Source: Trichoplax adhaerens (taxonomy: Eukaryota > Animalia > Placozoa). From it: a DNA stretch of 64,000 nt. Positions within the stretch are counted from its first letter, which is position 1; the number at the start of each line of letters is the position of its first letter. Shown here one piece after another: positions 26,392 to 61,700 of the stretch. The notes beneath the pieces were generated by a model. The model did not search any database. It was not told where the DNA came from and worked only from the letters and a program-made list of their open reading frames with translations. Where the stretch lies: assembly GCF_000150275.1 (NCBI RefSeq), contig NW_002060943.1, positions 10,974,878 through 11,038,877 of the forward strand. The letters are read 5' to 3'. The translations under genes and the position numbers were made by a program.

Positions 26392-29300
26392 TCATAACTG
26401 TGATGGTGTTGGATTTTTATCCATCACTTTGGTAACAGGTAGTTTTATTTCTTCATGTTTGCGCCAATATAGAAAAGCCAACCAACTTTCCCAAGTTAGT
26501 AATCGCTTATTATTGATATCCATAAGGTGTATTTCTATCAAAGTAGTACGGGCCCGTTAATCAGTACGGTTCAAACTCGAATTAAAAAATAAGTATAAAA
26601 AATTTCTTATGGCCCTTGTAAGAATATTCAACTTACTTAGTTTATTACTGCGAGGTCTTGGAATGCAACATAGCCCATTAATAAAGATATATCGAAACAA
26701 TGTTATGCAAATTGGTATAATAATAAATGGAGGAGGCAAAACTGGCTTTTCTAAATATTCTTCTATTAGAGAGTAACGCTGGAACTTCCAAACCGTGTCT
26801 GAATTTTCTTGTATTTTACTATAAGTATTGCTGTAAAAGCATCAATAAAAGCAAAGAGTTCAGTCTTATATTATTTAAGTGCAGCTTATAGTATTTCATA
26901 AATAAATACGGGTCAAACTTATGTATATTTTTCTTACTTGAAAACAGCAATCAATAAATTCAGTAACAGAACGTTTGCAATTAACATATATCCAGCTAAT
27001 AGAATAGGAACCATCCATGTATTAGCCACACATTTACTATTTGTAAGGTAAGTAGCGTTCGGTGGGCAGTCTCGGCCTATTAAGATAATCATAAACCGAT
27101 AAGATGTAGCTATTAGATTAAGGGAGTACTATATCAGCCAGTTTATCAAATAAGTTAGCACAGGTATGCCCGCGATATTTTACTACAGTAAATAAACATT
27201 ACCTTGGATTTGATCCACAAATAATTCTCCAAATAACTGAAAGAATGGCATATAGAATATCTGTCGTAGCAAATTCCAGTCCCACGGTGAATTTGGATAC
27301 AAAATCGCCTGACTAGCTACACCATAAGCGATGATAAAAATTGCTAGCAGTAATAAAAATTTTAACAAATCTTTGATCTGTGAGAAAAAGATAAATTGCA
27401 TACTATTTCATTAACGTCTGTATAGGAGGTAAAATTATATAAAATGAAAACTACCGTATTTAAATAGAGATTTGTATCTAATAAGTACAGTAAAACTACT
27501 GTATTACCGAGACATAATTTTGAACTTTATTTATATAAGTCTATAATATCCTCATTATATTGTTTTCAACTTTGCATCGTTTAAGATCATACCATTTTAT
27601 TGATCATCACCAGGAAAGGACCAAGATGTCTGCTAACTGAAAAGATATTTAATGTTCTGAAGCAGAAAACCAGAAAGCTCAAGCAATAGACTATATGCCC
27701 AACATCACGAGTAGCTTTAAAAAATCTCATAACTACACCAGTAGCAAAGAGAAGTGATGATATTGTATCTCCAATATTCCCAATACTCGAAAAGTATGAC
27801 TTTACTTTCGCAATGTATGTCGGCTGATTAATTATGACCAGCTATAAAAAAACAATGCATACGCAAATAACTAATGAGATTGCTAGACATGAAGATTTGA
27901 TCATGACAACGTTTACTGAAACGCATTACTGGAAATTTGATCAAGCAGAGCAGGCCATACCTGTCTAACTTCTTCAATAGTATATGTTGCAACCCATCCG
28001 ATTAGAATGTATTCAGGGATACTCGGGGATTGCTGATAATCAGATAGGATGATGTATGCAAATAGGACGATAAATACCAGGAAGGAAATCTTTAATGAAG
28101 ATAAAGTAGCGATAGTTTACGTATTACGTTAATGATTGACACAAGTATACTTAACAAGCCAGAATATACTGGAAATGAGATCGATACTTAAACTTGTAAT
28201 CAATAATGGTACTTATAAATGAGGATTTCTCAGGAATATTTTAATTATAGAAAACTGAAAATAAATGATAATAATCTTTATAAACTTACGACATTATACG
28301 CAAAAATTGTCCTGGGTGCAGTTAGAAACTGGCATCGGTTTCCTTGCAAGCAACTTTTACGTTCAGCAAGTTCTTCATCTTGTTCATCAACTAATGCCGA
28401 CTGATCGGTCATTTCAGTTCCAATGTCTAAAGCATAAGTAGATCTACGCCTCCAGATCCGTTTCTTAGATTTTGAATTTGCATCTTCATTGGGATTGGTT
28501 TGTTCTTGACCTGGCAATGCTTTAAGTTCTTGAGGCATCGTATCCTAATGTAAGCATAAATATTGTATCGAAATCAATAATTTTGACAGTACTTATTAAT
28601 AATCTTTCAGGAGTAAGTTGTAATTACTTCATTACCGCCTGCTATATTTACATCTGTATAAAGATATCGAATATAATATACTAATAATTAACTTTCACAC
28701 TATAATTATAATTAAAGAGTGATCAAAATTATAACAAGTAACGCGGCTTGGCAATAATAGCAGACTTATTAAACGGGTGTAATCATCACTATTCATATTG
28801 TAATATGGCTTACTGAAATATAAATACTCTGCAATCTTAAATAGTAATCCTATGCTAATATACTTCCGTATACGATAACTAATGTAATCAGTCCACTACC
28901 TACAATGAAATTTTTCAGAATATAATTAATTGGTGTTCAATATTATAGCCAGCTTTGCATAAATGACATGATGCAAAGCGGCATAGTAATGATCGCAGAC
29001 TTATTAAAAGGGTCTAATCATAGCTGTTGATATTTTACTCTGGCTAGCTGAATATAAATATTCCGCAGTTATAAGCAGTAATCCTATACTAATATACTTG
29101 TGCAAACGACGATCTAATCAATCTGATAGGGCTAGCTTAGATAGACGGCTATTTTGTAAAATGGCCGTATTTGCGCAGCCGACTTACAAAATAGCCAACT
29201 AGATAGACATATATAATCATATAAAGTGGCTATCATCGGACATTAATATCTCTGCTATGCTTCATTGGTAAACTTTTACTAACATCGTCGACCCATAGTT

Positions 29301-32300
29301 TGCTTAACAACGATTGACAGCAGCGTTCGGCTAAAAATTTCTCATTTCCAGACGAGTGAGAAATTTGTAAACAAGTGGCATTACCCCAATCTGGCATGAT
29401 TATTCGGAGTAGTATCATAGCATTAGCTTCATCATCATCGTAGTATTGACGTAAAAAATTCACCGCATGGCTTTGGAACAGACTATAAATTTTAGTAGTC
29501 ATAGTCAATCCATCATAAGTTAAAAGGTTCAAAATAATTTTCATTTATACATAAAAAGGAAGCCTATTTGATTAAATCACTTTCAACATCTTATCCTAGA
29601 TATAGATAGACATGTATAAGGAAAGCAATAAAGATAAAATTGATGATACAAATTAACACTTACCGAGATTCTACAGAAAATTGATGGCTGATATCAGTTG
29701 CTGCTACTCTCTTAGCTTGCTTACTTAAACGCCGTAGTAGTGTGTAGGCAATTAATGATGCTGCCATCGGATGTGCAACTTTTTGTAAAAGGAAATGAGC
29801 AATTTTGTATCGCCTTGCTAGAATTGACCAGATGAAATAATGATGTAGCGGATAGTCCAATAGTGATGAAGTATCTAAATTGATATTATTTATAGTTTCC
29901 CCGCCTTCTCGAACAGAACGGTGTCTCGCTTTCTCCTTCCTATATTTCTTGAAAGGATTTTCAAAGCCGTATCCCATCAATTTAGAGATGATATTACCCA
30001 CGGTGAAAAGTTTGATTATGTGGTTCTATATTATCGACAGAAGGAAAACTGATATTAGATCACAATTTTTTTAACAGATTGGTCGCATTAACTCAACTAA
30101 CATCATCTCACAAAAGAAATAAGAAAATTAAACAGAGTGGTTATCTGATTAGTAAGAGCGAATATCATTGTCTGATGACGGATATACGCGTATAGCTATC
30201 ATTTCCATAAGCTTACAAATTCATATGCGTACTCTTATGCAGTTCTATTGGGATTAATTAGCAAGAAATAGATTTTTAACGAAAGGCAAATGATTATGTT
30301 ATTATCTACTCGCAAATTAACTTGTGCGAAGTCATCAACATCAGGATAGAATAATCTACACGTCAGCAATTATATTGGTTGCATCAATAAAAATAGTATT
30401 TCTTTATCAGAAAATAGAAATGGCCGGTGCGATTTCTTACCGCTTTGCCGAATAGTCCCGTTTTATCCATTTTAAAAATGGGCTTTAAAATCAAGTCATT
30501 CCTTGCCTAGAAAAGTAAATGCCATCATTAATATACGGGAACGGTGAATGAATAATTTGCCATCGATAAGTACCGTAAAATCATATAGCTCCTTCAAAAC
30601 AGTTTTAGTAAAGATTTCTTCTGGCGTCATTTTTCCGCCAAATATCTCCATTACGAAATCAAGTCGATCATCAATCATAGCAATTACCAAAGCTGATTTT
30701 AAATCGGTAAAATTTAGCGTCTAAAAAAAGAAAAAACTTTCCAATGTCACTAATACAAGGTACTTTTAAATTCATTCAGTAAGTGACTGGCAAGAAATGA
30801 ATTGTAGTAAAGAGAATTTAAAATCATTGAGTGAATTTCTAACATGGCTAAAGATGTTCCTTGCTATCGAGTTAATTTACCTTATCATTCAAGCCAGACA
30901 TAATTTGTACTTTTGCTAAATATAACTTATTGCATTTAGATGCAATCTCAATTTGCTGTCTTTCATTGATCGGATCGAGACAATCTAATTAAGACAATAT
31001 TAATTATGAACATCTGTAATTGTTAACTCTGCCCAAAATAATGATACGTAATCGTTTTTATAAATTTGTATTCGGATTAGGAGGCATTCGATATTTACCT
31101 TTCATCAGCGATTGAACTATAGCCGTATCAAAATCCCCATCATCGGTGGTATACATTGTGAACTAGTAAAAGAAACAGAAATGTTCTAAAGCATATTGAA
31201 GAATATCACTCTTTCATTAGAATTCAAACTGAGCCAACTGGAATTTTATGTTAGCTACTACTAGTTTAAGTCCATAAGATAACCTTAAATTCTTTTAATA
31301 GAGTATTTCTCTTATTTCTAATTAAAGAAATCTACGATAGGTAACTTACAACATCTTTAAATTTTATTAGATCGTTGATTTTCTGGAAGCACTGCATGAT
31401 TTCCTTAAAATTGTGGTATTCAGACCAATTGAATTCTTCTCGAATTAGGCGCTTAGTTTCATTTTCATATTGTGGACTGATACGATAATTATTAACCCTT
31501 TCAGATATAAAGAAATGAATAGATTAACTAGAATAATTTATGAATATTATTACGATTAGAGCGTAATTTAATTACAAATAAAAGCAACATTTATAAAATT
31601 TTATAATTCGTTACTATCATTGCGTATTATTGAAGGTAGCATAGTTATTTTTAGTTGAGTAACCATCTGTAACTCATAACATCGTATTAATTACAATTTG
31701 TAATAAAATCGGGTAAAATTTCGATGTTTTTTGAATGGCTAACCTAAAAATATCCTGTATTTACAGTAATTTTGCTACTTTTTAATTATACTGCTATATA
31801 ATACAATTATCATGTTTTTGTTTATAACTATCGTTATACCTATATAAATACGAGTATAATTTATGTGTATTTAGATTTCCAATTATATTGCATGTTTTTT
31901 AGTCTATATCATATTGTACGCTTGATAGTCCTTAGCTGCATAGGTACGGGTATATTTATCTAGCTCTTATACCGGTACATTAATACTCTATCTAATTCGA
32001 CGTGATTTATCGATATCAATACTGTTAGCTTTTATACTCTAGTCTTGGCTAGTTAATGTAAAAGTATTGGCTGCCTCATCGCTATAAAAGGTATAAAAAT
32101 TTACTAAAAAATTAACCTAAAAATACACTGTATATATTACGGTAACTCCCTCAGCATATTTACTATAGTCTTGCTACTTTTCAATTATATCACTATGTAA
32201 CGTATCTATTATTTTACTATTTACAACTATCATTATACTTATGCTTGATACTAATTTAAATAATTATCAGATCTTTACTGCATTGAATGGCCATCGTTAC

Positions 32301-35300
32301 GTTATTATTTCTATGTAATACGAGTATAATCTAGTTAGAATTAGATTTGCAATTAAATATATTTGTCGGCCTATGCTATATTGTACTGTATATTTGATAG
32401 CCCATAGCTGCATCGATATATCTAGCAGTTACACGTGTACCTTAATACCCTATCGAATTTTATACGATCTATCAACATCAATACCATAAGCTTTTATAGT
32501 CTAGTCTTCACTAGTTGATATAAAGTGTTGACTATTTTATCTTTCTAGAAAGAATAGATAAAGGAATCAATTTAAACCCTTTCATACTCTTTGCCTCGAT
32601 GATCTTTGACTTTGCCAGTTGCCACCGCATGAGTATAAGCATATGCTAATATATTTGCTGCTCCACCACTGTCAGCAACAACCACTATTGGAACATTCAA
32701 ACGATGCTTGCTTCCACTATATAAATCAGTTACAGCAATGTAGCTGTGAAGTTTGCAGATTGTTTGATATCCTCCACCAACGATTATGTTTAGGCAGGGT
32801 ACAGTGTATTCTAATTTGGATATTCAATGGTCAGTTAATACGTTGATAGAATGGTCAGTATGAACATACAGTAACATAAAAAAGCTTTACTCTGTTAAAA
32901 AAGTGATTTACCATATAGCATTTTGCCAGTTAGCATTGCACATGGTTCTAATCCTACCGGTCGAGATTCTTCCAGAAATAATATGTGTTTAAAAGATTTA
33001 TGTAGGGGTACTGCAATCTCCTTAGCAAGCTTATTATCAGGATAACGAGCTTCTGTCCGATCCTAACAAAAACATAAATTGAAAAATATGCATAGAATAG
33101 ACATTAGTGAGTATTATTCAAAGTATTTACGTATCGGATGCAGTTTGAGCTGCTTATAAGGAAAACTCTATAGTATTTTTAAGTAAGCATAGAATAGATT
33201 TTAGCAAGTGCTGTTCAAAGCTATGGCTTTATAGATCAACCAATAGTTTGAGCTACATCAAGGAATTTTCTGAAGTATTTTTCGACTTTTACAAGTTATG
33301 ATAGCTATAAAGGTCGACACTCTATCGTACAATTTCATCTATAGGGTTGCTTCCATCGCTTTGATTTTGAACAATTGCGTTTTTCCAATACGCATAGCCA
33401 ATTAACATGGTATCGCTATTTCGCTGCATTTCAGTAGCTACTGAGCTTTCCATAACAGCTTCACCAACATAATCCATAATGCCAACATTATCACAATCTA
33501 CAGCTACAACGTATGGATTTATTAAACGTATAATCTTTGCTAAACCGAATCCAAAAATTTTTTTTAATTCAGGGTTAACATTGAATCCGCGAACTCCGCC
33601 AATAATAGTAATAGCCATGTCAGGACGCTGTAAATACCAGTACCAACGGAATAACTTGTAGACTTCATCAATATTTGCATTTGATGTCATACGTATATAC
33701 TATAATCAAGATAAATAATCGAATTACGAAGAGCAATAATTAGATCTTTTTAAACTCTAAAAGTTATCTTAAATATCATACTAAAAATTATGAAATTGGA
33801 AGAACTAGGACTGATATGCTGATTAATACGATACATAAATATTCGTAAATATCAATGAATTACAAAGAATAGCAACTAGACCTTTCTTAACTCTAACGCC
33901 TAAAAATTATCTTAAAGAAATACTAACAATTGTGGAATTGAATGAATTGCGACTGATATACCGATTAATAAGATGTAAAAATATGTGTCAATACTATGCT
34001 CTCTTATAAAAATAGCATGCAATGTCAAATTCTACTTCTATAAACCTTAGAACCACGATGTTCTTGAAAATGTATTTTACCACCCGAAACGTAATATTCG
34101 CGGTGCATAATATTTTTCATGTTATCCTGTTATGATTGGTGAATGAATGAAATAGAGTATTAAAATCTTCAATCTTTTACGTATTTAATTCTTACCAAAA
34201 ATCAATACTTAAAAATAGTTCAAGAACTCGAGTTAGTAATTGAAATGGTATCTAACTAGAGTTCATACAAGTATCACTTATAACCAAATTTAAGTCTTTA
34301 TGGAGATACAATATTTATTAAGCGTAGCTAATAGTAATAGTTGTTTACAGCACATTTACTACTATATGACTTATTGTAAAATAACTGGCTGAATAGCTTC
34401 CTAAAGGATTGTAAGACAAACTTTCTGCAATAATGATAACGCCATTTGTTCAATAGTCTACGATTGACATAATATGCGAAATTTTTGACGGTATGCGATC
34501 ATCTATTTGCAACCACTGACTGAGCAAAACATTTTTACATCATTTTTATTTCACTTGTTGCAATACTATAGCATATAACGGTTCATATGAGGTTTGCGAT
34601 TGGCCTGAATGTTAATAACTAATCATTACAAAGCAAGAAGTGTAATTAGGAATACTATGCCATAGCGTTATAGCTTAGATCAGGGAAACCGACATTACTT
34701 ATCCTTACAAAGCAATTTAAGGAAAATATCATTATAATTATATGATGGAAACTACTAAAACAACTACCAAAATAACTATTTCAAGTCGCGTCAATTCATA
34801 TAAGCAATAAATTCTTGGCTCCAATAAATAAATATGGTTGAAAATGAATTAATCAATAAGAGCATCACAGTATTTAGTAATTTGTACAAGTCAGATCTTT
34901 GAGCTTAAATTACCATGTTATATATACAGATCGAAATTATAATTTGGTTAATTACCTCCAATGCATTCTTTATACTCATTACAGTCACATCATTATTACC
35001 AGCAGCTGCTGATTCTATAGGTGTATGTCCTTCCTAATATGTCATAAAAATTAGCTGTAGATTAAATAAATTGCATCATCTGTTTCATCTACTAGAATTA
35101 ATATTTTTATAATGAGACATGCTTAATCTGTTTATATCATACTCGATAAATTATCCACTCTTAACTATTTCCCAAAGCAAATAATTGTAAAGTTAACTTA
35201 TGGTAACGGATTTAATCTCCAGAATGATGATGTAGTCTATATATTTATAGTATACTGCAATATAACTTTAACGTAATTGCCTTTAGCTTTACAATATTAA

Positions 35301-38300
35301 TAAAGTAAATTAAGTCTAGCACTCTAACTGCAATAAAGACTATTAATCATATCCAAATTCCTTTTAAGAAATTCCTTGAAAAAAGAAAATTAGCTACTGT
35401 ATGGATCCAAACACTGATGAAATCTATTAGTGATTCTATGTTGCACCTTATTAATCACCCAATCGAATCGCGATTGACCTTTGTCACCTTCCATATAGCG
35501 CAACAGTAGTTGTGTACATCTATCCTGACCGTTAATAGCCGCAATATGCAGAGGGGAATGGCCAAGTTTATTTCTCTCATAAAATAAATCTGGTGTCTGT
35601 TAAATGAAGATCAAATATTAGTCGTTACTGAAATGATTCAGTAAAATACTATACGAGTTCAAATAATCGATTGTTATAAACTTTTAATTTGATGTAATAT
35701 AAAAAATAGTGAATGATACAGCTTTGGAATCATATCTAGGAATAGGTCAGGAGTGATCAATTTACCATAAATCCTTCAGTAAGTTCATAATAAACTTTAA
35801 TTGCTTCTAATTGACCTTTCTTAACTGCATAGTGGATTGGATTATCGCCATTGTTCTATTTTGGTATAATAATGTATTCTTTAAAATATATATGTTAAGA
35901 AATTGTAACTGTACTATGCGTAAAGTTAATATCGATAGTTCCAATATTTAAAACTCGAAATATTTACTTTAAATCTGGAATTATAACTTTACTCACATCT
36001 TTGACGTAGGCATCTGCTCCATATTTTGTCAGGAGCTTAATTCCTTCTAAGTTATTATCGGCGAAAGCTTGATGCATAGCAGTTTCATCATTACCACTGA
36101 CATTCTTGTAGGATAATAATAATAATTTTACTACTAAAATAGCCTAATTATATGATATCTTATGAAGTAATTTCTTAATCATTTTGGTAAATGATAGGCC
36201 GGGGTCTTAACGACTGTGCAAGGGAATGTACTGTAGTTATTACTAAAGTAAAACATGCAACACATTTATAAACTATTCTTCCACACTCTGAAAAGGTCTT
36301 AAGTTACATAATGGATTAGGTAAGTGATTCTTTTTCTATTAGAATACAGTAGAAATACGCATAATTTTATACTTACAGGTAGGCTAAGTTTCCCTTCTCT
36401 GGCAACTCGTTCGATAAAGTCTTCGTTATTCTCCTTAGTAGCTTTATAGATGTCGATCATGGTAGTCTAAATGATACAATTAGTAACAGATCACACAATT
36501 TAATCGTTAGCATATGCTAGTATACAAAAAATAAATTGGATGATAAAATAGAAACTGTCCATTCGATATACAACATTCCAAATTTTCTCAATATACGATG
36601 TCATTGCTGAATGGATTTATCATCAGCATACTTGATCATTTCTAGGTAAATGCTGTACTAGTTCTTCAAAATAGCAATAATTACGTTTTCCATTTCCAGG
36701 ACGTCGGCATCAAATTTAAGTAATAATTCAACGCAATTTTCATGATGATTTTCTCTGGCAGCTTGTAGAGGTGTCCGGCCATACTATCACATAGATATCA
36801 TTTATTACACACGATAATATTGCTGGCAGCACTCAATCATAATCACTTTTATCAATATCTCATGGAATTTTAGGAAAATTAAACTATGTAAAACCTCATT
36901 CATGCATCGTATATCCACTTTTTGGTCAATAATCCACTTTAGCATTTCGTAGTGTCCTTTCGTGGCAGAAATGTGGCATAAATTCATGCCAGACTAGAAA
37001 AAATAAAATTTTGCTATACAGTTATTGCTAGAATTATTCATTTATGACTAAAGGAATGGTTTAATATCATGGGTAGCGATTTCAATTTTTCTTCTAGTCA
37101 ATTCGATCTGGCACATATTTACCCAGATTGATTCATTTATGACTAACAGCAACAGTTTATTATCATAGATAGCCATTTCTATCCTATTTAGAGTATAGTA
37201 AAGTGATTCTGTTTATGATTTAATTCGATAACTTACCATAGTCTTGACGTGAATGTCGACATTGTTGCTATTTAGCCACATGAGCATTTCCATGTAGCCT
37301 CCTTCCGCAGCGACACAAGCCATATTATTTCCAGTCTAAGATTGCATACAGCAATGAATCATTTAGCATCAATCAACATTACTCGTACAGTCTAGTATTT
37401 CCAGAAAAATTAGCAATATCATAGATTAGCTCTGTCTTATTCACCGAATCGACCCAGTTAATATCCACTTTCTGCTGTTTTAGCCAAACTAATAATTCCA
37501 TCTTTCCATTGTGCGCTGCATGATAAGCTATGCTTCTCCCAAGCTACCATAGCAGTGGGATAATTAAATCAAGATTTATTGAAACGCCATTCAATGCAAG
37601 TATAATAATTCAAAGAGTTAAAATTTAGACATTATCACAGTTTTTACTACTGCTAAATTTTAGTTAATAGAAAGGAATGATGAATTATAAGCTTCAATAA
37701 CGACAGTCAATAGAAATGTATTTAATAGAATTAATTTAGACATTATCTTATTTTCTACTACCATTAAATTATAGCTAATAGAAAGGATTGATGAATTATT
37801 GGGTGCAATAACGACATCCAATATAAGTGCATTAATTAATAATTAAATTTATTCATTATCGCAGTTTCTACTAATACTAAATTATAGCCAAGAGGAAGGA
37901 TTGATGGGCGATTAGCTACAATTTTTGATATTATTGTTTCTCTTTACCTTATCTTTGCGATGGATATCAACATGTTTATCATTAAGCCAAGAAAGCATTT
38001 CTAGATCATTCCGTTCGGCGCTGTAGTAGCTGATATTATTGCCATGCTGGATATTTTTAAACGACAAGGAAGTAATGAAAGCTAATTCAATATCAGCATA
38101 TTAGAAGAGTGACAGTAGTAGAATGATAAAGTGCACAAGTTAAAAGTGCTGCGGATTTTGACTACCGCTTACAATTCAGATAGCTCATGATTGCATTATA
38201 GTGTCGTACTGCCTCCTACATTCAAAACTAGTTTAGATTCCTGATCTAAAAATACTTTAATTTCTCTGTTCTCTGAGCATATTACAAGTAATAACTATTT

Positions 38301-41300
38301 GTATGTAGCTATAACTTGCAGACAGCAGTATTCTATTCTAAAATTCAATATTTTGACATGAGTTCTAGCCAAAAAGTTATGGTATTGGGTAGTAATGTAT
38401 TCATTTACTACGTAGTATATTTTATGCTTGATGAAGGACTAAAGTAAAATATTTTGTTAGTATAGGACGAAAAAGAATTGATCTTTTCCACGATCCATTC
38501 CACTCTAATGATGAGCTGCACCGACATGTAATCATATAAATCTCTTGTAATATTGCTACTTGAGTTGAGACAGTTTTACTTCTATAGTACAAGGTGATTT
38601 TCGTGCATTTAATACTCATTTAGAGAATTGAGTTTCTATAAAAGTTTATCCACTTTCTATGTCAAACTATCAGCACCATTGCATTAGTTACTCATATAGT
38701 GAATACTTACAGCATCAATATGATATAAATCACCCCGACGTTTATGAAGTTCTTTAAGAATAGCTAAAGAGCCTCGTTTAACTGCATAAAACAGCGGGGT
38801 AGATCCTCCTTCCTATGGAAAGGTAGAAAGTAAATTTATAAATATCAAATCATATTCAAGCCTTACAAACATTATCATAGCTATAAAAAAAAATAGCTAT
38901 AGCATAAATAGAATGTATACGGTACATCCTAATGCTAGATAGACATAGTAGTCAATAGAGTATTTCAAAAAATTATTTAATCGTTTAATAATAAGTAGGA
39001 CTATAAAAATTCTCTTATAATTGAAAGAATGAACATGATATTAATATTCTGGATTTCTATCGCTAATAAAGCGCGGCTCTACGATTCTACTAAACCATGG
39101 ACTACTAGATGTACCAAAAATATGTAAAAAAATTTAGAAGTCTACATCGATACATTAACATTAAAGCTAAAATTAAATAATAGGTATCTAGTTCCGATCT
39201 ATTTTAAATTACAACCGATAAGACTGGCAACTAATTACATATTAATTTCACAATTGTACTAAACCTATAATTTAAGTAATTAAGCGAACGAGAAGATGAA
39301 AGTACCCAATTCCAACTTAGTTTAAAATATAACAGATGAGTCTAGCAACTGACAATATGCAACTTTACAATTGTGCTAAAAGTGGTAGTTTAACAAATAA
39401 AATTATTAATGAAATGAATTTATCTAGTCCGAAATCTAGATTAAATTGTAGTGAGACTAGTGACTAATAATGTATTACTTCACAATTCTACTATACCTGT
39501 ACCTTAATAAATGAAATGAATACAAAGATAAAATTATCTAGTTCCAATCTAGTTTCAACTTTAATCAAAAAAGGCTACGAATATTAATCGTACTTATCAA
39601 GTATGAAACTCTACTATGAATCGAAAATTAAGTCAAATGAACAATCTTGGCCCACTAATCAAGTGCAACTATCAAATTCTAGCATAAGCTCAATAACATA
39701 AAGTGAAACTAACGTCTTGTGCATTGGGATCTGCGTCGTAATTGAGCAAAATTGTAACCGCATTTAAATCTCCATTAAAGACCGCTTTATGAAGGACAGT
39801 CTCCTTTCTCGCTCCCTTAATAATTCAATTAAGAAAAAAGAAATAATTTTTTGGTATTAGTAATTGAGAAGTGATTTTAATTGAATTTCTGTATTCTTGT
39901 TATGGTTAGTTGGCCTTGGATAAGTCTAAAGAATGATCTAATCCTGCAATCGTATTAGCCGATATCACGTATCTTACAGTAATGCTAATATCTACACCAT
40001 TTCGAGACATTTCTTCTAGTAGCTTGATATTTTCTAGCTTGGCCAATTCAAAGATATCGTCAACGGTAACCTAACCAATTACAATCATTATTATATTACA
40101 GAAACTATCATATATACTTTGTTTAACTAGTAGAACATCCTGCATAATCTAAAATAGAAATATATATATATATAGGATAATTTCGCTCTTTACCAACAAC
40201 TTGATAAGTTCAACATGACACGTCTGAAAGGCGTAATCGATGGCCTTTTTGCCTTTCTAGTAGATATAGAATGAAAGAGAAAGAATAACATAAAATACAT
40301 GTACAATATTTATCATTTATCTATTTCACTTTGATAACATATAAACTTACGTTATTTTGTATGTCTAATCTCGCTCCTTTTTCGATCAATAAGCTGGTAC
40401 ATTTATAACTACCGTTCATGCAAGCAAGATGAAGTGGAGTATTACCAACCTATATCCATCAAGATTGTTAGAAATGGGCAATTTTTTTAATTTGTCGAAA
40501 GAATAAATAAAAATCTGATGACATCTGATAGGTATTGCATGAATAACCGATAACAGTTAATAGTTCATTTTAAACTAATATTTAACATCGTTCTCATTAA
40601 ATATTAAAAAGAGCATCGGCGATATTCTTAATTTCTAAGGTTACATTTACTACATACAAGAAAGCAATTTAAAGATGTAAATGGTGCAATAGAGTAGGGA
40701 TGATGTTACGGATTTACAAGCGTCTCTGTATCTAATTATAGGATTTCTTGTATTGTATTCATATCGGTTGTACAGTATTGCAACCTTATCAGAGCTTAAC
40801 GGCACTAGTTCTGTTCCGCACTAGATCAGTAAAGGACTATATTGTACAGTATATAAGGTGGTGAGAAATCAGAATAAAGATAGATATTCACGTGGAAGCT
40901 TAGCTGACGATCTCGCTTCAGTTGACTGAGAGCATACCAAAAAACAGACGCTATCGTTACCGCTAACAGATGGTCTAATAACGTAAAGGGGATTAAATCA
41001 TTTTGCTGAAACGTACGTTATTAGCACTATTTAGGTCAACACCATATTGAATCAAGGTGCCGATCACTTCTTTTCTCCTGTAAGCTGCTGCTGTGTGCAT
41101 TGGTTTCCATTTTGCCTAATGATGATTAAAAAGTACCATGAAAATTTTTATGCAATACTATTGTATAATTTTGAAGTAATAATACTGAATACTTTGGCGT
41201 AAAACTAATACTTTAAGATGATATGAATACAAAGTAAATTATTAATTATCTCGATATATTACATTATTGTCTGCTTCAATTTGACCTCCATGGTCATATA

Positions 41301-44300
41301 GCAAGGTAAAAATTTTGCAATCGCCTTTCATTGCAGCTTGATGCATTAATGTATTTCCATATTCCTAATGGAGTAAGGAACAAGCAAAAGAAAATGTCAA
41401 CCTTTAAAAGCCGATTATGGTTTCAATTTTGAGTGATCATAGCAACATCAGAATAGCTTAAGCTACTAGAAGCACTAAATCGAGCAAAAATTGGCTTACA
41501 TTGGAATAGTTAGGATCGGCACCATACTGCAATGCCCATTGAACTGCCTTATAATTCCCTTCCATGACAGCCAATCTCAATAAAATTTGCTGATAGCAAA
41601 ATAAATTTATCAACATGCTTTAATTCAAAGTCCATCGAAGAAAATTTTAATAGAAATCTACACAATTCTGCAGCATTTAAGTAATCCCAATGATCTGTCA
41701 AGTTAATCTTTCTTTATCGATTCTATCTTACCGGTTGATCTATATCGTTATTGTTTTGAATACTCTTATACAGTTTTTCACTCTGTGACATGCTTTTTTC
41801 CACACCATCCTTCTTGCTAATCTATAATGAAAATAGTTATAAAGAATTACTAATTTAATTTTTATCTACTTACACTCAATAAAGAGATTCATCGGTAAAA
41901 TAAAATAAGAAATTGATCGACTACTTTGTAAGCGTTTATGAACCTATTAGATGGATAAAGTATAATAGCTTCAAATAATAAAAAATGAATTTCTTATATT
42001 AATAGTTTAGCTTTTCACCCACAATTGAAAGTACAGTATTTAGATTTACTCATGTATAGTATTGCAAAAGATATGTTGAAGTAGTTCATGAAATTTAGCG
42101 CAAAGTATTCTCAATTGTAGATCGCCTAATTTAATATAAATCCGTTGAAAGTACGCGTATAAATACGAAAATTTAGCCTAATGTGCTCGTGTGCTCATAC
42201 CAGTTATATAAATTAGATAGTGTAGTAAATTATTACAAAAATTACTCTTATCGAGGCTTTACCTGATCAGTAGCTAAAATGTAATCAGTTTTAATATCAT
42301 CTAAGGTCAAGGCTGATTCCACTTCGGGTTGAAATAAGATTCGGCAGGCATTTCATTTATATTTTAAAGTGAAAACAAATTCAAAGCATGAAATTAGAAA
42401 TAGAAAACACTAACGATATGAAATAAAAGGAGCTAATGCTGAGTGTAACCGTTAGAAATTTTATTGCTAACTATCCATCACTTTAGTAAACTTTAAGAGA
42501 ATTTTTATTTTTACTATCTAATTAACTATTGACCAATTTTGGAGATAATTAAGCAATCGATAACCTAATGTATTTTATATTTTGGACAACAATAATAGAA
42601 ATTTTATATTTTTTTACCAACTAATTCTGGATAGCCTTCTATCTGGATAGCATCAATTTCACAAAATTGATTTACTATGGTGCAATCAAGTTCAAGCATG
42701 ACGGTATCCGTTTGAAATGGAGGAATCTGAAAAATTTAATAGGTGAGTAATCGGTTTTAAGCCATAATACAACAAACAGTCATAAAATCTTTACCACTCT
42801 ATTCAATTAGTAGAAATAAGATAGTCGCTATTCTATCGGCATAGTTCTGTTAAAGCAATCCAGTGCTTTTAATACTGATCTATTAAACACTATAGATTAA
42901 CTCTATTTATCTCTAACCGTTTGCAGAAATGGAGCAAATATTCGAGCAATCTTGTATGATAATGGAAACTTGCTTGGGCTCATTTCCCAAATTGGGATCC
43001 ATTGCTCTTTGTCTTTGTTCCATACACAGATTCCTTTAACAGCCCCACAGTTATAGGTTTCATAGATATTAATTTTCTTGATATAAATGGATTCTTCAAA
43101 TTTCACCTATGGCACAAATTATTGTCTTTGTGAATCAAACTAATTACATATTCTTATCATCAATTATTTCTGCAAAAGAATGCAGAAATAGCATCTTGCT
43201 TTAACGTTAAGGTTAGGATTTATTGAAATGATTCATTATAGCTTTCTAATTTCGTTGTTATACATAAGTAATCATTAGTAACAGTATTAGTAGTATGGTT
43301 ATATCTTTGTAATCAAATTCTGTTCTTCAGGATAAAAAAACAAATTTGCAATATCATTCTGTGGTGGAGACAGTAGTTAGGTACAATGTGATAATTGCGG
43401 TAGGTCAACGTGGTGGCTGCCGTGAGTAAAGTGTGAATACTAACTGTGACTAATAATGCAACTTAAGAAATCTAAGGTAGAAAACGGCAGTATTTGTAGC
43501 AATGGCATTAGAACACATGCAGAGAACATCATTGTAGGATTAGATACAACATATACCATAACAGGTTATAGAATAGCAGATGATTGTAGAAAATAGCGAG
43601 GACTGTAATAACTAAATGTAGTAAGCCATATTTGAACCTAGAGCGAACAGACTGTAGATATGTCTAAATATAAGATCAATACAGCATGTCTATATTTAAG
43701 AGTAAAATATAGTTACAGTATATTCTAAATACACTACACATTCGATATTATACGCTAAAATTATAGCGATGTGTTTTACACGATACCGGTAACTAGCTAA
43801 TCTCGCATATTTGAACGCTCGTTGTCCGTAATGAATTACGTATGTTATGTATTTCAGTTATCTATCTGGTAAGTTATTTATATTAATACTTTTAATAGAT
43901 CAGAAATGGAGGAATTAATGAAATGAAATAAAATTTGAAAAGAATAGCTACTCCAGGCTTAGTTTATAAAGCAAATCTCAATATAAAAGTGCTTGTTGAT
44001 AACTGATGGTTATTATAGATTCGTATATATGATAAACGTTTCTTGGTTTCCATCGCAGAATTTATAACTATACTACTCACCCACAGATTCTACATATACT
44101 ACAACCTACTTCGTAATAGAATATAATCTAAGTAATATAACTGGTATAATATTAATTAAAGCAATTCTTAAATTATTAAAGCATTATAATATTGAGATAT
44201 AAATTCTAATAGCTGACGATCATTTATAAGGTAGAACGGAAATTTATACAACTAGGCGGCTTGCTTCTAGAATCTATGGAAATTGTAGGAATATCTTTAT

Positions 44301-47063
44301 AGAATATTGTCACAAGTTGTACAATCGGTATGATATAGACTAGCGAATTTCTTTCAAGATTTTAAAACCATTTTGATGTTACAATGTAAAGTCTTACGTT
44401 CGATGATCTTGATGATTAATATCTTACTAATCTAGCGTATTACAATGACGTTTAAAGTGTTTTTAATGATACGTATTTTTATACACGAAAGATTCGATCA
44501 CGTCTAGAAGCACTATTGAACGATATGATACTGTATTGATATATTATTGATTGCAAAAATTTGACAAAAAACGATCGTATAACAAATATAAAGTTCGTGG
44601 GATACTGTTTGACATCTAATTAAGAAAAGAAAAGTAATCGCAAATCATGAATCATAGATTCTTACCACAATGCACTGATCATTATCGTATTTGCCCTGAG
44701 CCCAAGCTCCTTCTAAATGACCATACCTAGGATAAACAGTAGGAGGACCAATGACACAGTCGGCATTCCATCTAAAGCATAAAAGATAAATGTCGTTTAT
44801 ATACATGGCAGTAGAGACTTAAGTCTGTTTATTTACTTAGAAAAACAAGTAATGGTTAATATCACCAAACTAGATATGAAATTTTTTTACCATAACATGC
44901 ATATTCTAGTATCTTAATTATTATGACATTCGTAATAATTCATATTCTAAAACTAGACATAAATGTTTTCGTGGTTAAAGATATGTAAAAGTGTCACAAA
45001 CCAGCTTAGTGACAAGGATAACGTAAAATAAATCTCTAAATTACTATAGTCTCCGGGATTCGGTATCCCTTGACTATCTCACAAGAATTTAGACGCCTTT
45101 GATTCTACGTTAAACTCAACTAGACAATTGAGAACTACTTTATTCAACTATCTGACGGGCTTATATACCCTTCTACAGCAGCTAACATTCATGAGTCATC
45201 TTATATAAAATACTTAGGTGAGAACATCTACTAATTAATTTTTCACAGTCGGACTACAATATATCCATTCACAGAATCATTTCAGTGCACATTACAACAC
45301 AGCATTAAATTTACTGTAACATATTTATAATTAGAGTAATTCCTATTGTAAGTAACTAGTTGTAATATATTATCACTATATTATATTCACCAAATTTAGA
45401 TAGCTATTTCTTCACGGTAGTTCGTACCGTGACAAAAAGATATAACAGTTTCGTTAACTGCATGAAACGGAAAATGGCGAAAATCTAACAAAGGCTATAT
45501 AATGTCGCTAGTGTTTGGTAACTGTTTTGCTGTAAACTGATTTCGTCCAAACTGGATATAAAAATTTTTATCATCTACGACATAGACATTCTAATATCTA
45601 TTTTGATTACTGTAATATACGAAATAGTTCATATTTTACTATAGAGATGAGTATTTTTACTGTTATAAATATGTGGAAGATATACGCGTACTATTTACGC
45701 TAGCTGCACGAAATTAGTTACAGGACTTGACCGAAAAAATAACGAAAATCTATTAGAGACTTTATAAGGTTAGAAGTGCTTGCTAATTTTGTAGATTTTC
45801 TTTTGAATTTTGATCATTTCTTAGCTGTAAACTGATTTCGTACAGTCACTGTAACTAAGATATCTTCAAATCTATAATATGCGTCATAGTTACTATCGCC
45901 AAATTAGATGTAAAAAGTTTTGTAACCAAGGACATCAATAATCCTAATTACTAGAATATGCATAATTTAACAGGCGAAGGAGAAACCTCAGCTGGAGGGG
46001 GAGAATTTAATACCAAATCTCATTCTACGTTTAACTACAGTAGGAAATGATGAGAATAGAAATCTAACCTGCAGTTATCCAATTGGCTTGAGTAACTCAT
46101 AACTTCATGAGCCCACAGTTTCTTTCTTGGTGGTGGTGGTGGAGGTTTGTCTTCTTTAACTTCAGTCTTTTCCGATTCAGCATCAGTTTTGTCTGATGCC
46201 TGAATATCTTTTTCTGATTTGGAATCTTCAGTTGCCGAAGGCGATGTTTTTCCTTTATCGGTCGTTGTTTTTGATGCCTGTGATTTTGATACAGTTGTTG
46301 CTGTTTTACTATCGGCCGTAGTTGTTGATATTGTAGGATTAGTAGAAGTAGTTGATGTTGTGGGATTAGTCGAAGTGGTTGGGGTTGTAGGCTTGATCGA
46401 AGTGGTTGGTGTTGTGGACTTAGCGGAAGCTGTTGATGTTGCTGGCTTAGTAGAGGTTGCCGGCGTTGTTGGCTTGCTAGAGGTAGTCGATGTTGTTGGC
46501 TTATTACTGGAGGTAGTCGATGTTGTTGGCTTGGTAGAAGAGTTTGGTGTTGTAGACTTGCTTGTAGGCTTACTTGCTGCAGTCTTCGCGGTGTTTGTTA
46601 CTTTTATAGGCTTACCACTAGGTGTCAGTGTCGTAGGTGCCGTTTTTGAGGTCGGCGTTGTTGGCTTTTTAGCTATAGTAGATCCTGAAGATTTAGGAGG
46701 CTGGTTTGCACCTGGAGTCTTGCTATCAGTAAAGAAATTAGCATAAGCTGGCTTTTCTTCTGTCGGTGGAGAAGACGAATTTTCCTGACTTCGCATCTTC
46801 AAAAATAGCGGAGAGGATGCCAGAGTATTAGGTCTTTCATTCGCCGCGATAGTCTTGCTTGTTTTTTGGGGTAGTGATGTAACAGGTGTTGGATTAGTAT
46901 GATTAGCGGATGTTACATTAGAATTTGATCCATTATTGGATGCGTCCGATATCGATGGCATCAATATTTGGGGGCCAGATATGTTGGGAGCACTGTTTCG
47001 TGGAATTAAAGGCTTTGTAGGCTTATTAGAACCCCTCGTATAGTCCGCCGATGGGCGAATCAT
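26392..47063 (-). CDS. Ankyrin-repeat TRPM-like cation channel, paralog A (low-complexity N-terminus, FBXL4-N-like domain, ~18 ANK, SLOG/MHR, 6TM, TRP box)
   Basis: Phase-compatible exon chain from ATG 47063: 47063-46069, 44771-44666, 43106-42918, 42726-42618, 42321-42263, 41821-41732, 18 phase-0 ankyrin-type exons 41589-34956, 34126-34046 (GGKIHF...SK), 33699-33331 (YIRMTS...[15 protein letters not shown]), then MHR exons ([19 protein letters not shown]; [12 protein letters not shown]; DDRLDFV; FIWSILARR; WGNATCLQI), S2 [16 protein letters not shown], pore [24 protein letters not shown] box WKFQRY, and stop TGA at 26394-26392. Confidence 0.85.
28740..29110. repeat. Intronic degenerate direct repeat (~135 bp x2; ~28740-28875 and ~28975-29110)
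   Basis: gcagacttattaaa.gggt.taatcat ... tataaata.tc.gca ... agtaatcctat.ctaatatactt occurs twice. Confidence 0.75.
31739..32552. repeat. Intronic degenerate tandem duplication (~370-440 bp x2)
   Basis: Collinear shared anchors in 31739-32090 and 32112-32552: taacctaaaaata, ttgctactttt, aatacgagtataat, ttagattt.caatta, ttgatag.cc.tagctgcat, agcttttata.tctagtctt..ctagtt. Confidence 0.8.
33746..34015. repeat. Intronic degenerate tandem repeat (~140 bp x2)
   Basis: ttatcttaaa...atactaa.aatt.tg.aattg...gactgatat.c.gattaata.gat occurs twice. Confidence 0.7.
37620..37922. repeat. Intronic tandem repeat (~112 bp x ~2.7)
   Basis: aattta..cattatc...ttt.tacta....taaatt.tag..aa.ag.aagga.tgatg occurs three times. 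Confidence 0.8.
39165..39560. repeat. Intronic tandem repeat (~118 bp x ~3.3)
   Basis: Recurrent tatctagttcc.atct / agact.gcaact.a / tt.acaatt.t.cta units. Confidence 0.7.
42618..46120 (-). other. FBXL4-N-terminal-like (discoidin/galactose-binding-like beta-sandwich) domain exons of paralog A
   Basis: Spliced translation: [145 protein letters not shown]. The motifs SSQ / GPPxVYPxYG / ETYxxGAV / ARxFxP / E(I/L)DAxxxxG match my recollection of the FBXL4 N-terminal domain; no search was run. Confidence 0.7.
45470..45860. repeat. Intronic degenerate direct repeat
   Basis: aaaat..cgaaaatcta ... gctgtaaactgatttcgt occurs at ~45470-45550 and ~45735-45845. Confidence 0.55.
46069..47063 (-). other. 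First coding exon of paralog A: Pro/Ser/Thr/Lys-rich low-complexity region ending in [21 protein letters not shown]
   Basis: 342-aa ORF with no signal peptide. Donor AG|GTTAGA at 46069/46068 is phase-compatible with the exon at 44771. Confidence 0.75.
46300..46580 (-). repeat. Coding ~27-bp degenerate minisatellite (KPTTSTTSS-type 9-aa repeats)
   Basis: Recurrent gttgttggcttagtagaggtagtcgat-like units on the + strand, giving KPTT/NPTT repeats in the translation. Confidence 0.8.
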
Positions 47064-58700: not shown

Positions 58701-61700
58701 TGGTAGTATAAATTGCATGATGAAGTTTTAAAATGGTATTGTAACCGCCTCCAAATACGATATGAATAGAAGGAATATCGCAAACTGCAAATAAAAATAA
58801 AAAAATACTCTATTAAGTATAAATAATTAATTGGCTAGAACATTACGAAAATATTAAGGTTATTCAACTGCCTTGATTGATTATTGTGAGATTTAAACTA
58901 ATTGGATAGCTACTGTGCTACTATATGATAGACTAAATACAGTTACTATAAAACTTAACTTTTAAGTACTCTAACTTTAGATAATCAATAAGTCATGATT
59001 TCACCCATTATTGCAGTAATTGTTGCAATAATATTACATTCTACTTTGAAAAGCAAGACTCACCATATAAATATTCTCCCATTAGAAGTGCACGGACGTC
59101 TCCTTTACCCTTTTCATAAGCTTCATTAGTGCTTTGCCTATCATTCTTCTTATTCTGTGAGTCATCTTCAACAATTGTGGTGCTAACACTTATCACAGTG
59201 TTTCGTTCAAGAGCATCATCATCTATATTTACTGTTTTAGTGCGAGCATTTACAATACTTCCTGGTCGATGGGGAGCGCTCACAATACTTCCTGGTTGGG
59301 CAGAAGCGTGTACATTCTGTCTTGATCGATTACGAGTACCAGCAAGAGCACCTTGTCGAGAGAGAGTACGTGATCGAGCAGGAGTATCTTGGATACTTTC
59401 TGCTACAGTTTGGTCATCTACGATACTTGGTGCTTTAGCCAGGCCATCAACCCGGTTTGCTGCACGAGTAGGACCACTAATAGTACTTGTTCCAATACCA
59501 CTGCGACCAGGACCATCGACCATATTGTCTTTTCGTAATTGGGTAGGACCTCCAATAGTACTTCCTGCTCTAATACGGCTACGATCATCAAAAGCACTTG
59601 CTGCTGAAGTAGGATCAATATTGAGGCCATCTTCATTATCATTCTCGATTTCTTCAACATTCTCACCATTATCAATAAATACAAAGTAATTAAATATAGG
59701 ACTAAGTTTAATTGGAAAATCAGGTTCCTCATATGTCATCAAGATTTCTTCTTTACTAGTTTCCTGTAAATATTAATGATGACATGTACTTTAAATTTGC
59801 TACTCTATAAAGTAATTAATTAAGTAGTTATTATTGACATTGTCTTAAGGGTGAGTATTAAGTCAATAATTTATCATATGAGTCATAATATCAGTTGGCG
59901 TACTAAGCTTACATTATAATGCGTGAAATTATACTAGAGATAAAAATTCTCGTATCGCTCGATTTTTAAGAGCTATATTATCCGTGTAGTAAGCGGTATA
60001 CATACATTCTATACGGTGCATATGTAATCAATCGTTAAAAATTTTAGACCTTATCATCAGTGACGGATCTTGGCTTCCAATTGGCATATCCTATTATCAT
60101 ACTTTGATCAGAGTCAAATTCTGCACTCCCTTCCATCGATTCGCCAATAAATTGTATAAATCCACGGTCATCGTTATCATTTGTCATTAATAATGCATTC
60201 ATTGAACCAACCGCTTTCGAAATGGCAAATCCAAAAATTTTCTTCAGTTCAGGATTAATACTATCTTTTTCTTGAATACCGCCTTCTAGTGCAATTACCA
60301 AACCGGGTGATGACATACCCCAATACCAGCGCAATAATATCCTTAAGTCAACAGCTGGAGTGTTTGGTTTAATTTTCATAAACTGTTAAGCATCAAGTCA
60401 AGAATATTATGTATTTAGTCAGCCCTCATCAACTCAATTATCGATGATAACCAATGAAATAGTAATATTCTATTCATTGTTGAGTTCATCAGAAAGATAA
60501 TGTATGAATATTGACATGCTATATCCTCTTGTTCTATCTCGTTCTCTTTAAGTTGTACAGCGCTTGATAAAGCGCAATTTTGTGCAGATATCCAGTTACA
60601 TCCTCATTATCTTATATTACCTTTGATGTTTTGACTTTTCCATTTTCTAAGGTAAACTTAATTTCACCTCCTCCAATGAATCCCCTTCGGCGTATTATGT
60701 GAGGTAGTTGTTTCTAATTAGTAATAAAATGAATTACATATCTATCAGTATAGGATAAATCTAAAAGCACATAAATGATAAGGAAATAGTGCATATATTT
60801 AAGCTGCACGAGTAAATAAGTTTTGAAAATCATTTTGTCTATACATCATTAATATAATTCTTACATTCATAAATCGTACTATTACATCCACAATTTCCCT
60901 ACTATCATTCTGGCGAGCAATATCAAGAGGAGTCTCTAGCTTCTATACTCAGATAAAAAGCCGTCATTCATCGATAAAGTAGCAATCCTAACCACGATAG
61001 ACTAACTGGCATAATACAAAGAGCGCTAATAACACTGGTTATAACAAAGTTCATAATAGGGTATCTAAACTATTTATAGAGTCGTTTTAAATAGATATTA
61101 CTTGATTTTTCCATATTTGTCTCATTACTATTTAATCATAAATTATAGTACAAACCTATCTTTCTGCTATCATTAAACTGTAATATTTTTAATAATACAA
61201 AGTAGTAGCGATCATCTGTTTTATCACTCGTTGTAATGAAACTTACACGAATCTCTAGTCATTAATTTACTAAATATTTCATGTATTGCAGCCACGAAAT
61301 AACTGCTTTAGTAGGAACTCGAAATAGTATTATAAAATACTAAATATTTCAATTATTATAATCTATTATCTTGTTTATGCTTAGATTAGCAGTATAAAGA
61401 AAATTACACTGAGCGGTAAAGTAAGATATAAGAATGAGTTCTGGACAGTATATACGATTCCAATGAGCCATCAATTGTAAATTTTATCATAAATTAGCGT
61501 GTAAGATTTACATTGTTAAAGATTCCAATATTTCGATCACCATTTGATTTAATTTCGTAGAAATTCATCAGTAATTCCATACATTCAACTCGTTCATTCA
61601 AGGCAGCGATGTGCAATAATGATTGTCCTTCAGGCAACTTTTCATAAAACGCTTTTAAAATCTATATTAGAGGTATACAGGTTCATATGAAAAATAGTAG

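Follow-up and report, generated by a model that had tools for sequence, protein, structure and literature searches.

The 64,000-nucleotide (nt) window analysed here (Trichoplax adhaerens, contig NW_002060943.1, positions 10,974,878 to 11,038,877; all coordinates below are those of the window unless a contig is named) is AT-rich (~31% G+C) and contains split eukaryotic genes. On its minus strand lies a locus, hereafter named copy A, in which a row of ankyrin-type exons precedes a linker exon and the core of a TRPM-type cation channel. We estimate the probability that array, linker and TRPM core form one gene with a single reading frame at roughly 82–85%. This gene would extend from ~47.06 to 26.39 kb and encode a channel subunit of ~2,100 residues, in which the cysteine-rich N-terminus usual for TRPM proteins would have been swapped for ~18 ankyrin repeats (587 residues), probably with a low-complexity stretch and a conserved globular domain ahead of them. 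Judged from the sequence comparisons described below, the ankyrin-TRPM layout is a real and conserved fusion on a known channel type.

The minus strand was scanned as stop-to-stop frames, and AG/GT borders and codon phase were then checked. All similarity searches were performed with single exons, and only the aligned codons of separate exons were pooled, for the calculation of nonsynonymous to synonymous substitution ratios (dN/dS). A row of open frames of ~33 residues with the ankyrin consensus was found between 41.6 and 34.9 kb. The 18 exons (41589-34956) have AG directly before and GT directly after them, are in phase 0 and contain no stops, and many of them start right behind a TAG that doubles as acceptor. 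Their lengths range from 63 to 150 nt, with 99 or 102 nt as the commonest values, and when aligned each one begins at the G-x-T-P-L-H hairpin, indicating one repeat per exon. The initial annotation had placed these 18 exons, the linker (34126-34046) and the first SLOG exon (33699-33331) in the same positions, in phase 0, with AG/GT borders and without stops. The donor of exon 17 was corrected to 35447 (instead of 35459), a donor that is kept in an ortholog from a related species (contig L010) and gives the 150 nt also found in paralog B, a tandem copy of copy A.

The array begins with a helix-first capping repeat (exon 1, 41500-41589, 90 nt, phase 0/0; Ank_4, 1.3e-4), with 14 of 30 residues identical to paralog B. 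It is followed by exon 2 (41263-41364, 102 nt; Ank_3, 3.7e-4; 20/34 identical to B), exon 3 (41017-41115, 99 nt; Ank_3, 1e-5) and exon 4 (40351-40449, 99 nt; Ank, 6.2e-10). Exon 5 (40194-40256) is a degenerate half repeat of 63 nt, a length shared with paralog B (12/21 identical), and exon 6 (39978-40070, 93 nt; 96 nt in B) is also degenerate. Exon 7 (39714-39815, 102 nt; Ank_4, 1.1e-7), exon 8 (38711-38812, 102 nt; Ank_5, 3.7e-4, and Ank, 4.1e-4), exon 9 (37948-38046, 99 nt; Ank_3, 0.044, and 1.7e-12 with a hidden Markov model (HMM) built from the repeats themselves) and exon 10 (37445-37543, 99 nt; Ank_3, 1.6e-3) lead to exon 11 (37237-37335, 99 nt; 14/32 identical to B), which carries the sequence signature of exons 9-12. 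The array continues with exon 12 (36895-36993, 99 nt; Ank_4, 7.3e-4), exon 13 (36685-36783, 99 nt; Ank, 2.5e-6), the degenerate exon 14 (36377-36466, 90 nt, of equal length in B) and exon 15 (35997-36104, 108 nt; Ank_4, 6.4e-5), which is kept in B and in the related-species contig L012. The last three are exon 16 (35766-35855, 90 nt; Ank_5, 1.2e-3; 28/30 amino acids identical in L010), exon 17 (35447-35596, 150 nt; Ank, 5.9e-5; donor GT after ...INK kept in L010, with 45/50 amino acids identical) and exon 18 (34956-35033, 78 nt), a partial last repeat whose AG/GT borders are kept in A, L010, B and L012, and whose dN/dS against L010 is 0.125.

Searched exon by exon against Pfam, 13 of the 18 matched Ank-family models on their own, with E values from 6e-10 to 0.04. 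No match was obtained with single exons for 40256-40194, 40070-39978, 37335-37237, 36466-36377 and 35033-34956; these five are short or degenerate, yet they stand in the repeat register and are kept in paralog B. The HMM of the repeats matched neither the window's plus strand over its 64 kb nor 40 kb around the two other TRPM loci of the genome, which argues that the array is not due to chance. This HMM weakly matches ordinary TRPM proteins at residues ~430-480, a signal attributable to the internal ankyrin-like unit of MHR3/4.

Two further observations concern the array. Exons 9-12 (38046-36895, and 63670-62810 in paralog B, both on the minus strand) carry the common signature E-M-L-x-W-L ... 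K-V-D-I and are a run of internal exon duplications predating the split between A and B. Within the 567-nt intron 3 of copy A, an open frame with phase-0 AG/GT borders (40820-40710, minus strand) has neither ankyrin similarity nor a counterpart in paralog B, where this intron measures 180 nt, and it is probably not an exon.

Downstream of exon 18, the linker exon (34046-34126, minus strand, 81 nt, phase 0/0), with the pattern G-x-I-x-F ... S/A-K, is followed by the first SLOG (MHR1/2) exon (33331-33699, minus strand). This exon matches LSDAT_euk (PF18139) at 1e-15 over profile positions 3-109, and the second SLOG exon (32823-32590) matches it at 3.2e-8. Among PDB entries, TRPM2 structures are the best matches of the first SLOG exon (1.1e-12), which aligns to them from residue 142. 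The remaining TRPM core (26392-33062, minus strand) was delimited by Pfam, tblastn with TRPM2-like proteins and PDB searches, and its splice borders are partly approximate. It comprises, besides the second SLOG exon, the TRPM2-like domain of the MHR3/4 region (PF25508; 30025-29663 and 29544-29236, at 1.5e-8 and 2.8e-7, both above the curated cut-off), S1-S2 (28089-27958), S3-S4 (27841-27590), S5-pore (27371-27207), pore-S6 (27095-26937) and the TRP helix (26835-26689). The tblastn matches with TRPM2-like proteins span S1-S6, and the S3-S4 exon matched only TRPM chains in the PDB (best 9e-12; TRPM3, TRPM8 and TRPM2 at ~1e-11). Of the profiles suggested in the initial annotation, those for the ankyrin and SLOG parts thus gave matches, while single-exon scores for Ion_trans fell below the cut-off, as expected for queries that are fragments.

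The TRP helix of copy A contains V-W-K-F-Q-R, with the canonical WKFQR box, and the pore helix contains F-G-E-L-F, with the acidic F-G-E filter motif. Copy A also retains the five Ca2+-binding residues of TRPM2/4/5/8: the Glu and Gln of S2, the Asn and Asp of S3 and the TRP-helix Glu. The reading frame ends in a short C-terminus, with the stop (26394-26392) soon after a conserved W-x-x-W-x-A-F-x-Y-W-R-K. Neither a Nudix domain nor any match to the last 370 residues of a TRPM2-like protein, NUDT9H included, was found in the window. A feature at odds with conventional TRPMs, which are described in the literature as having no N-terminal array, is the presence of 18 in-frame ankyrin-type exons upstream of the core; this array does not take the core out of the TRPM family.

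The same arrangement is found in paralog B, part of which lies in the window (60050-64000, minus strand) with ankyrin exons 9-18 (63670-60865), a linker (60713-60621) and a SLOG exon (60382-60050); its ankyrin exons 1-8 lie beyond the window end (L009). Its exons are all in phase 0 with AG/GT borders, and matches to Pfam Ank models were obtained. Between copies A and B, 20 exons match (18 ankyrin, linker and SLOG) in equal order, with nearly all lengths identical and 37% amino acid identity, and the core blocks of both copies are colinear, with zero disruption. Contigs from related organisms were also recovered: a word-indexed search with the SLOG exon returned one fragment (P0151), which led to the ortholog contigs L010 and L011 (ENA metagenome, A-type) and L012 and L013 (Logan, B-type). 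The SLOG exon of L010/L011 is 82% identical to that of copy A. In these contigs, ankyrin exons 15/16-18 are retained together with the linker, the SLOG exon and the full set of splice sites.

Synonymous sites are saturated in both the A-type and the B-type comparisons (dS 1.3-1.8), and the introns are ~50% identical to those of the orthologs, which equals noise. Between A and L010, a dN/dS of 0.039 was obtained for ankyrin exons 16-18 (dS 1.4) and likewise 0.039 for the linker exon alone; between B and L012 the value was 0.25. The exons of the fusion are under purifying selection. With saturated dS, dN/dS values of 0.04-0.25, all splice sites kept across paralogs and species and a core frame that is intact throughout, the probability that copy A is a decaying or non-functional gene with residual open frames is next to negligible.

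Differences between the copies were also seen in the core. The TRP box of paralog B is W-K-S-Q-R. The S3 Asp of the Ca2+ site, present in copy A (27841-27590) and in TRPM2/4/5/8, is replaced by Ile in paralog B (54610-54359), so that A and B may differ in Ca2+ dependence. The S5-pore-S6 region is encoded by one exon in paralog B (54198-53884, minus strand) and by two, with an intron between them, in copy A (27407-27186 and 27128-26937); this intron was gained or lost after the duplication. Between its first and second SLOG exons paralog B also has a low-complexity open frame of 243 residues (59772-59044, minus strand) with no counterpart in copy A, which may be a large disordered SLOG insertion or non-coding sequence.

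One important question is whether the array and the core could instead belong to two neighbouring minus-strand genes, an ankyrin protein ending at ~34.95 kb and a TRPM starting in the linker or SLOG exon, that were duplicated as a block. Two points weigh in this direction. Copy A has an intron of 829 nt between exon 18 and the linker, with two conserved Met codons in the linker and a further Met codon early in the SLOG exon. The tandem duplication of a multi-gene block would also yield the colinearity of A and B, so that colinearity alone proves nothing. Two further points count against the fusion model in general: Pfam does not call five of the 18 exons ankyrin when they are taken singly, and the functional interpretation of the array is by analogy only. 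The gap measures, however, just 124 nt in L010, 151 nt in B and 157 nt in L012, too little to accommodate a terminal exon with a poly(A) site as well as a promoter and a first exon. The linker exons of B and L012 contain no ATG and start at an acceptor directly behind a stop codon, and the SLOG exon of L012 has no ATG near its start. The donor of exon 18 is conserved in A, L010, B and L012, and reading through it gives unrelated tails of unequal length (4 to 21 residues). In addition, a dN/dS of 0.04 indicates strong coding constraint on the linker, which corresponds to an internal fragment, truncated, of the N-terminal exon of a TRPM (see below). Two separate genes are therefore very unlikely, and the paralog, the ortholog contigs, the intron size, the lack of an independent start in the B lineage and the origin of the linker together point to a single reading frame. 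The 829-nt intron of copy A was also considered as a repeat or transposon, which was ruled out, since it is single copy in the genome.

The same 829-nt intron and the linker Met codons make an internal start conceivable for copy A, giving an ankyrin-free isoform in addition to the fusion, with a promoter in the intron and translation starting at the linker Met. Such an isoform would be compatible with a single fused gene. A Met-Lys-Asn-(Ile/Val)-Met sequence is present at the start of the linker in both A and its ortholog L010, and the intron of copy A is large and single copy. L010 has equal Met codons, but its intron is of 124 nt, no Met is found at this place in the B lineage, and the two codons ahead of the Met, together with the acceptor, are conserved. 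The short isoform is considered unlikely.

The origin of the fusion can be approached through the two other TRPM loci. The genome assembly searched (105,631,681 bases in 1,414 contigs) contains four SLOG loci, in agreement with TRPM1-4 of the published Trichoplax TRP repertoire, which lists TRPM1-4, TRPML, TRPP1-2 and TRPV1-2. Besides A and B these are paralogs C and D (G000:C1399, ~925.9-926.6 kb, L003/L005; and G000:C1409, ~2333.2-2334.2 kb, L004/L007), where no ankyrin exons were found within 10 kb upstream. In each of them the canonical pre-SLOG exon with its cysteine-rich stretch, C-x-C-G ... P-T-D-A-Y-G-x-I-x-F ... A-K, is separated by a phase-0 intron from a SLOG exon beginning with F/Y-I-R. 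The A/B linker aligns only to the 3' half of this exon (G-x-I-x-F ... S-K), with the phase-0 intron retained, and the CxCG...H part of the cysteine-rich stretch that precedes MHR1, kept in C and D, is absent from it. This alignment suggests that the linker is an internal remnant of the ancestral TRPM N-terminal (pre-SLOG) exon, and hence points to exon shuffling: ankyrin exons would have been joined to a duplicate of a TRPM gene, earlier than both the A/B duplication and the divergence of the related species sampled, with the cysteine-rich half of the exon being lost in the process.

According to this evidence, the fusion appears to have arisen secondarily among placozoan-type TRPMs and does not look like a separate TRP family, since the linker is a truncated TRPM exon and every match of the core is a TRPM. 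The distinct TRP architecture proposed in the initial annotation holds in so far as the junction between array and TRPM core is conserved in the paralog and the orthologs, but would not amount to a TRP family of its own. The opposite polarity, in which the array is an ancestral TRPM trait kept only in this lineage, might be expected from N-terminal ankyrin repeats being present in the other group-1 TRP families, repeats whose loss is inferred in the literature to have preceded the TRPM-TRPS split. It is, nevertheless, highly improbable: two TRPM loci of the same genome lack ankyrin exons and keep the canonical pre-SLOG exon with its cysteine-rich stretch, the A/B linker copies this exon in truncated form, an N-terminal array was seen in 0 of the 150 nearest SLOG relatives, and the A/B SLOG domains are ~35% identical to TRPM2-like proteins, with no sign of a basal position.

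Four blocks conserved with paralog B were found between 46.2 and 42.6 kb, and these, together with two short spacer exons, form six predicted coding exons (41732-47063, minus strand) that run in frame into ankyrin exon 1: U1 (47063?-46069, with a putative 5' limit), U2 (44771-44666), U3 (43106-42918), U4 (42726-42618), U5 (42321-42263) and U6 (41821-41732). Their phases (2, 0, 0, 1, 0, 0) are identical in A and B, and the six counterparts in paralog B lie at ~1570-4030 of L009. They would encode a stretch rich in Ser, Thr and Pro, a globular domain of ~170 residues with motifs that include G-P-P-x-V-Y-P-x-Y-G-H, and spacers. Searched singly, the upstream exons gave no significant Pfam or PDB match. 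On this basis the ankyrin array is probably not the true N-terminus.

Among known channels, copy A is most like the TRPM2 type (human, zebrafish and Nematostella TRPM2; PDB 6mix, 6drj and 6co7), which provided the best PDB matches of the SLOG exon (E 1e-12). The two share the SLOG/MHR1-2 region, the TRPM2-like MHR domain, S1-S6, the WKFQR box and, in copy A, the S2, S3 and TRP-helix residues of the Ca2+ site. They differ in that copy A has neither the cysteine-rich N-terminus nor NUDT9H; moreover, in those chains of solved TRPMs that are not fusion constructs, the SLOG domain starts at residue 17-160, whereas here it is preceded by array and linker with at least 614 residues in total, and probably by more upstream. 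TRPA1, with an array of ~16-18 repeats, resembles copy A in having an N-terminal array of similar size on a six-transmembrane TRP channel. The repeat number of copy A fits the 14-18 of a TRPA channel, but in place of a TRPA core with a C-terminal coiled coil, the transmembrane core, the TRP helix and the pre-S1 domains are those of a TRPM, all core matches are to TRPM, and no TRPA chain appeared among the 60 PDB matches listed for the S3-S4 exon. In TRPN/NOMPC, too, an extended ankyrin solenoid precedes the TRP pore; TRPN differs in its reported 28-29 repeats, as against 18 here, which stand directly before a TRPN/TRPC-like core, and copy A has a TRPM core with SLOG and MHR3/4 between array and pore. 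TRPS (ced-11-like) and choanoflagellate TRPW channels are relatives or analogues whose TRP cores bear another kind of cytosolic module at the N-terminus, SLOG for TRPS and WD40 propellers for TRPW. TRPS proteins, which combine SLOG with Nudix, are reported to lack ankyrin repeats and to have a divergent TRP domain, in contrast with the canonical WKFQR box of copy A and the absence of a Nudix/NUDT9H match in the window, and TRPW shows no SLOG-ankyrin combination.

Published studies of TRPM evolution describe ankyrin repeats as a mark of all group-1 TRP families except TRPM, with just two or three divergent ankyrin-like units inside MHR3/4, and infer an ankyrin-free TRPM/TRPS ancestor. This agrees with the initial claim that described TRPMs lack N-terminal ankyrin arrays. 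A search for earlier Ank+SLOG+TRP proteins, also suggested initially, gave none: no ankyrin-bearing TRPM was found in the searchable literature, and an N-terminal array was present in none of the 150 nearest of the 196 SLOG relatives detected with this short, divergent query, in a database that showed no placozoan gene models. Database entries with the ankyrin-TRPM architecture may thus exist already. In the search of representative proteins with the SLOG exon the best match was 35% identical. A profile search, in which exons were aligned to a newt TRPM2-like protein, was dominated by vertebrate TRPM2 and was uninformative on architecture, and the ESM Atlas returned short SLOG fragments only. 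The nearest relatives of the SLOG exon (P0001-P0004, P0006 and P0021) are mollusc, jellyfish and sturgeon-'contaminant' models with 2-7 SLOG domains per protein, apparently because gene predictors merged tandem TRPM genes.

The product of copy A is predicted to assemble as a tetramer into a cation channel that depends on Ca2+ and is permeable to divalent ions. Its four ankyrin solenoids would hang from the outer MHR1/2 ring and link the channel to a partner, be it cytoskeleton, membrane or a second protein; the array would thus serve as tether or scaffold in the manner of the TRPN and TRPA1 arrays. TRPN/NOMPC is the precedent for an ankyrin tether or spring. By this analogy a tether or scaffold role is tentatively proposed, at somewhat less than even odds. 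The mechano- or chemosensor and gating-spring roles put forward at first would likewise be extrapolated from these channels; a spring-like mechanical role is possible, and any force would have to cross the SLOG and MHR1-4 layers that lie between array and pore. A tether-gated mechanotransduction channel on a TRPM core, with the solenoid as compliant link and the far-N-terminal globular domain as anchor, is considered quite unlikely. If it were true, the fusion would be a convergent stand-in for TRPN/TRPA in a lineage reported to have neither. Since all repeat exons are in phase 0, exon skipping could vary the length of the array with the frame kept.

As read from the sequences, the ankyrin-TRPM layout is shared by a second copy and by related species, within a family described without ankyrin repeats. 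Trichoplax is a placozoan, an animal without neurons, and its thermotaxis is reported to be inhibited by a TRPM3 blocker, which makes A and B candidate sensory transduction genes. The fusion would also be a natural experiment in modularity: it asks if a pore can be regulated or tethered by an ankyrin solenoid that is foreign to it and acts through the SLOG/MHR layer. Accounts of TRP evolution assume an ankyrin-free TRPM/TRPS ancestor, and the fusion bears on them: conserved and under selection, it indicates that a SLOG-bearing channel can re-acquire an ankyrin module.

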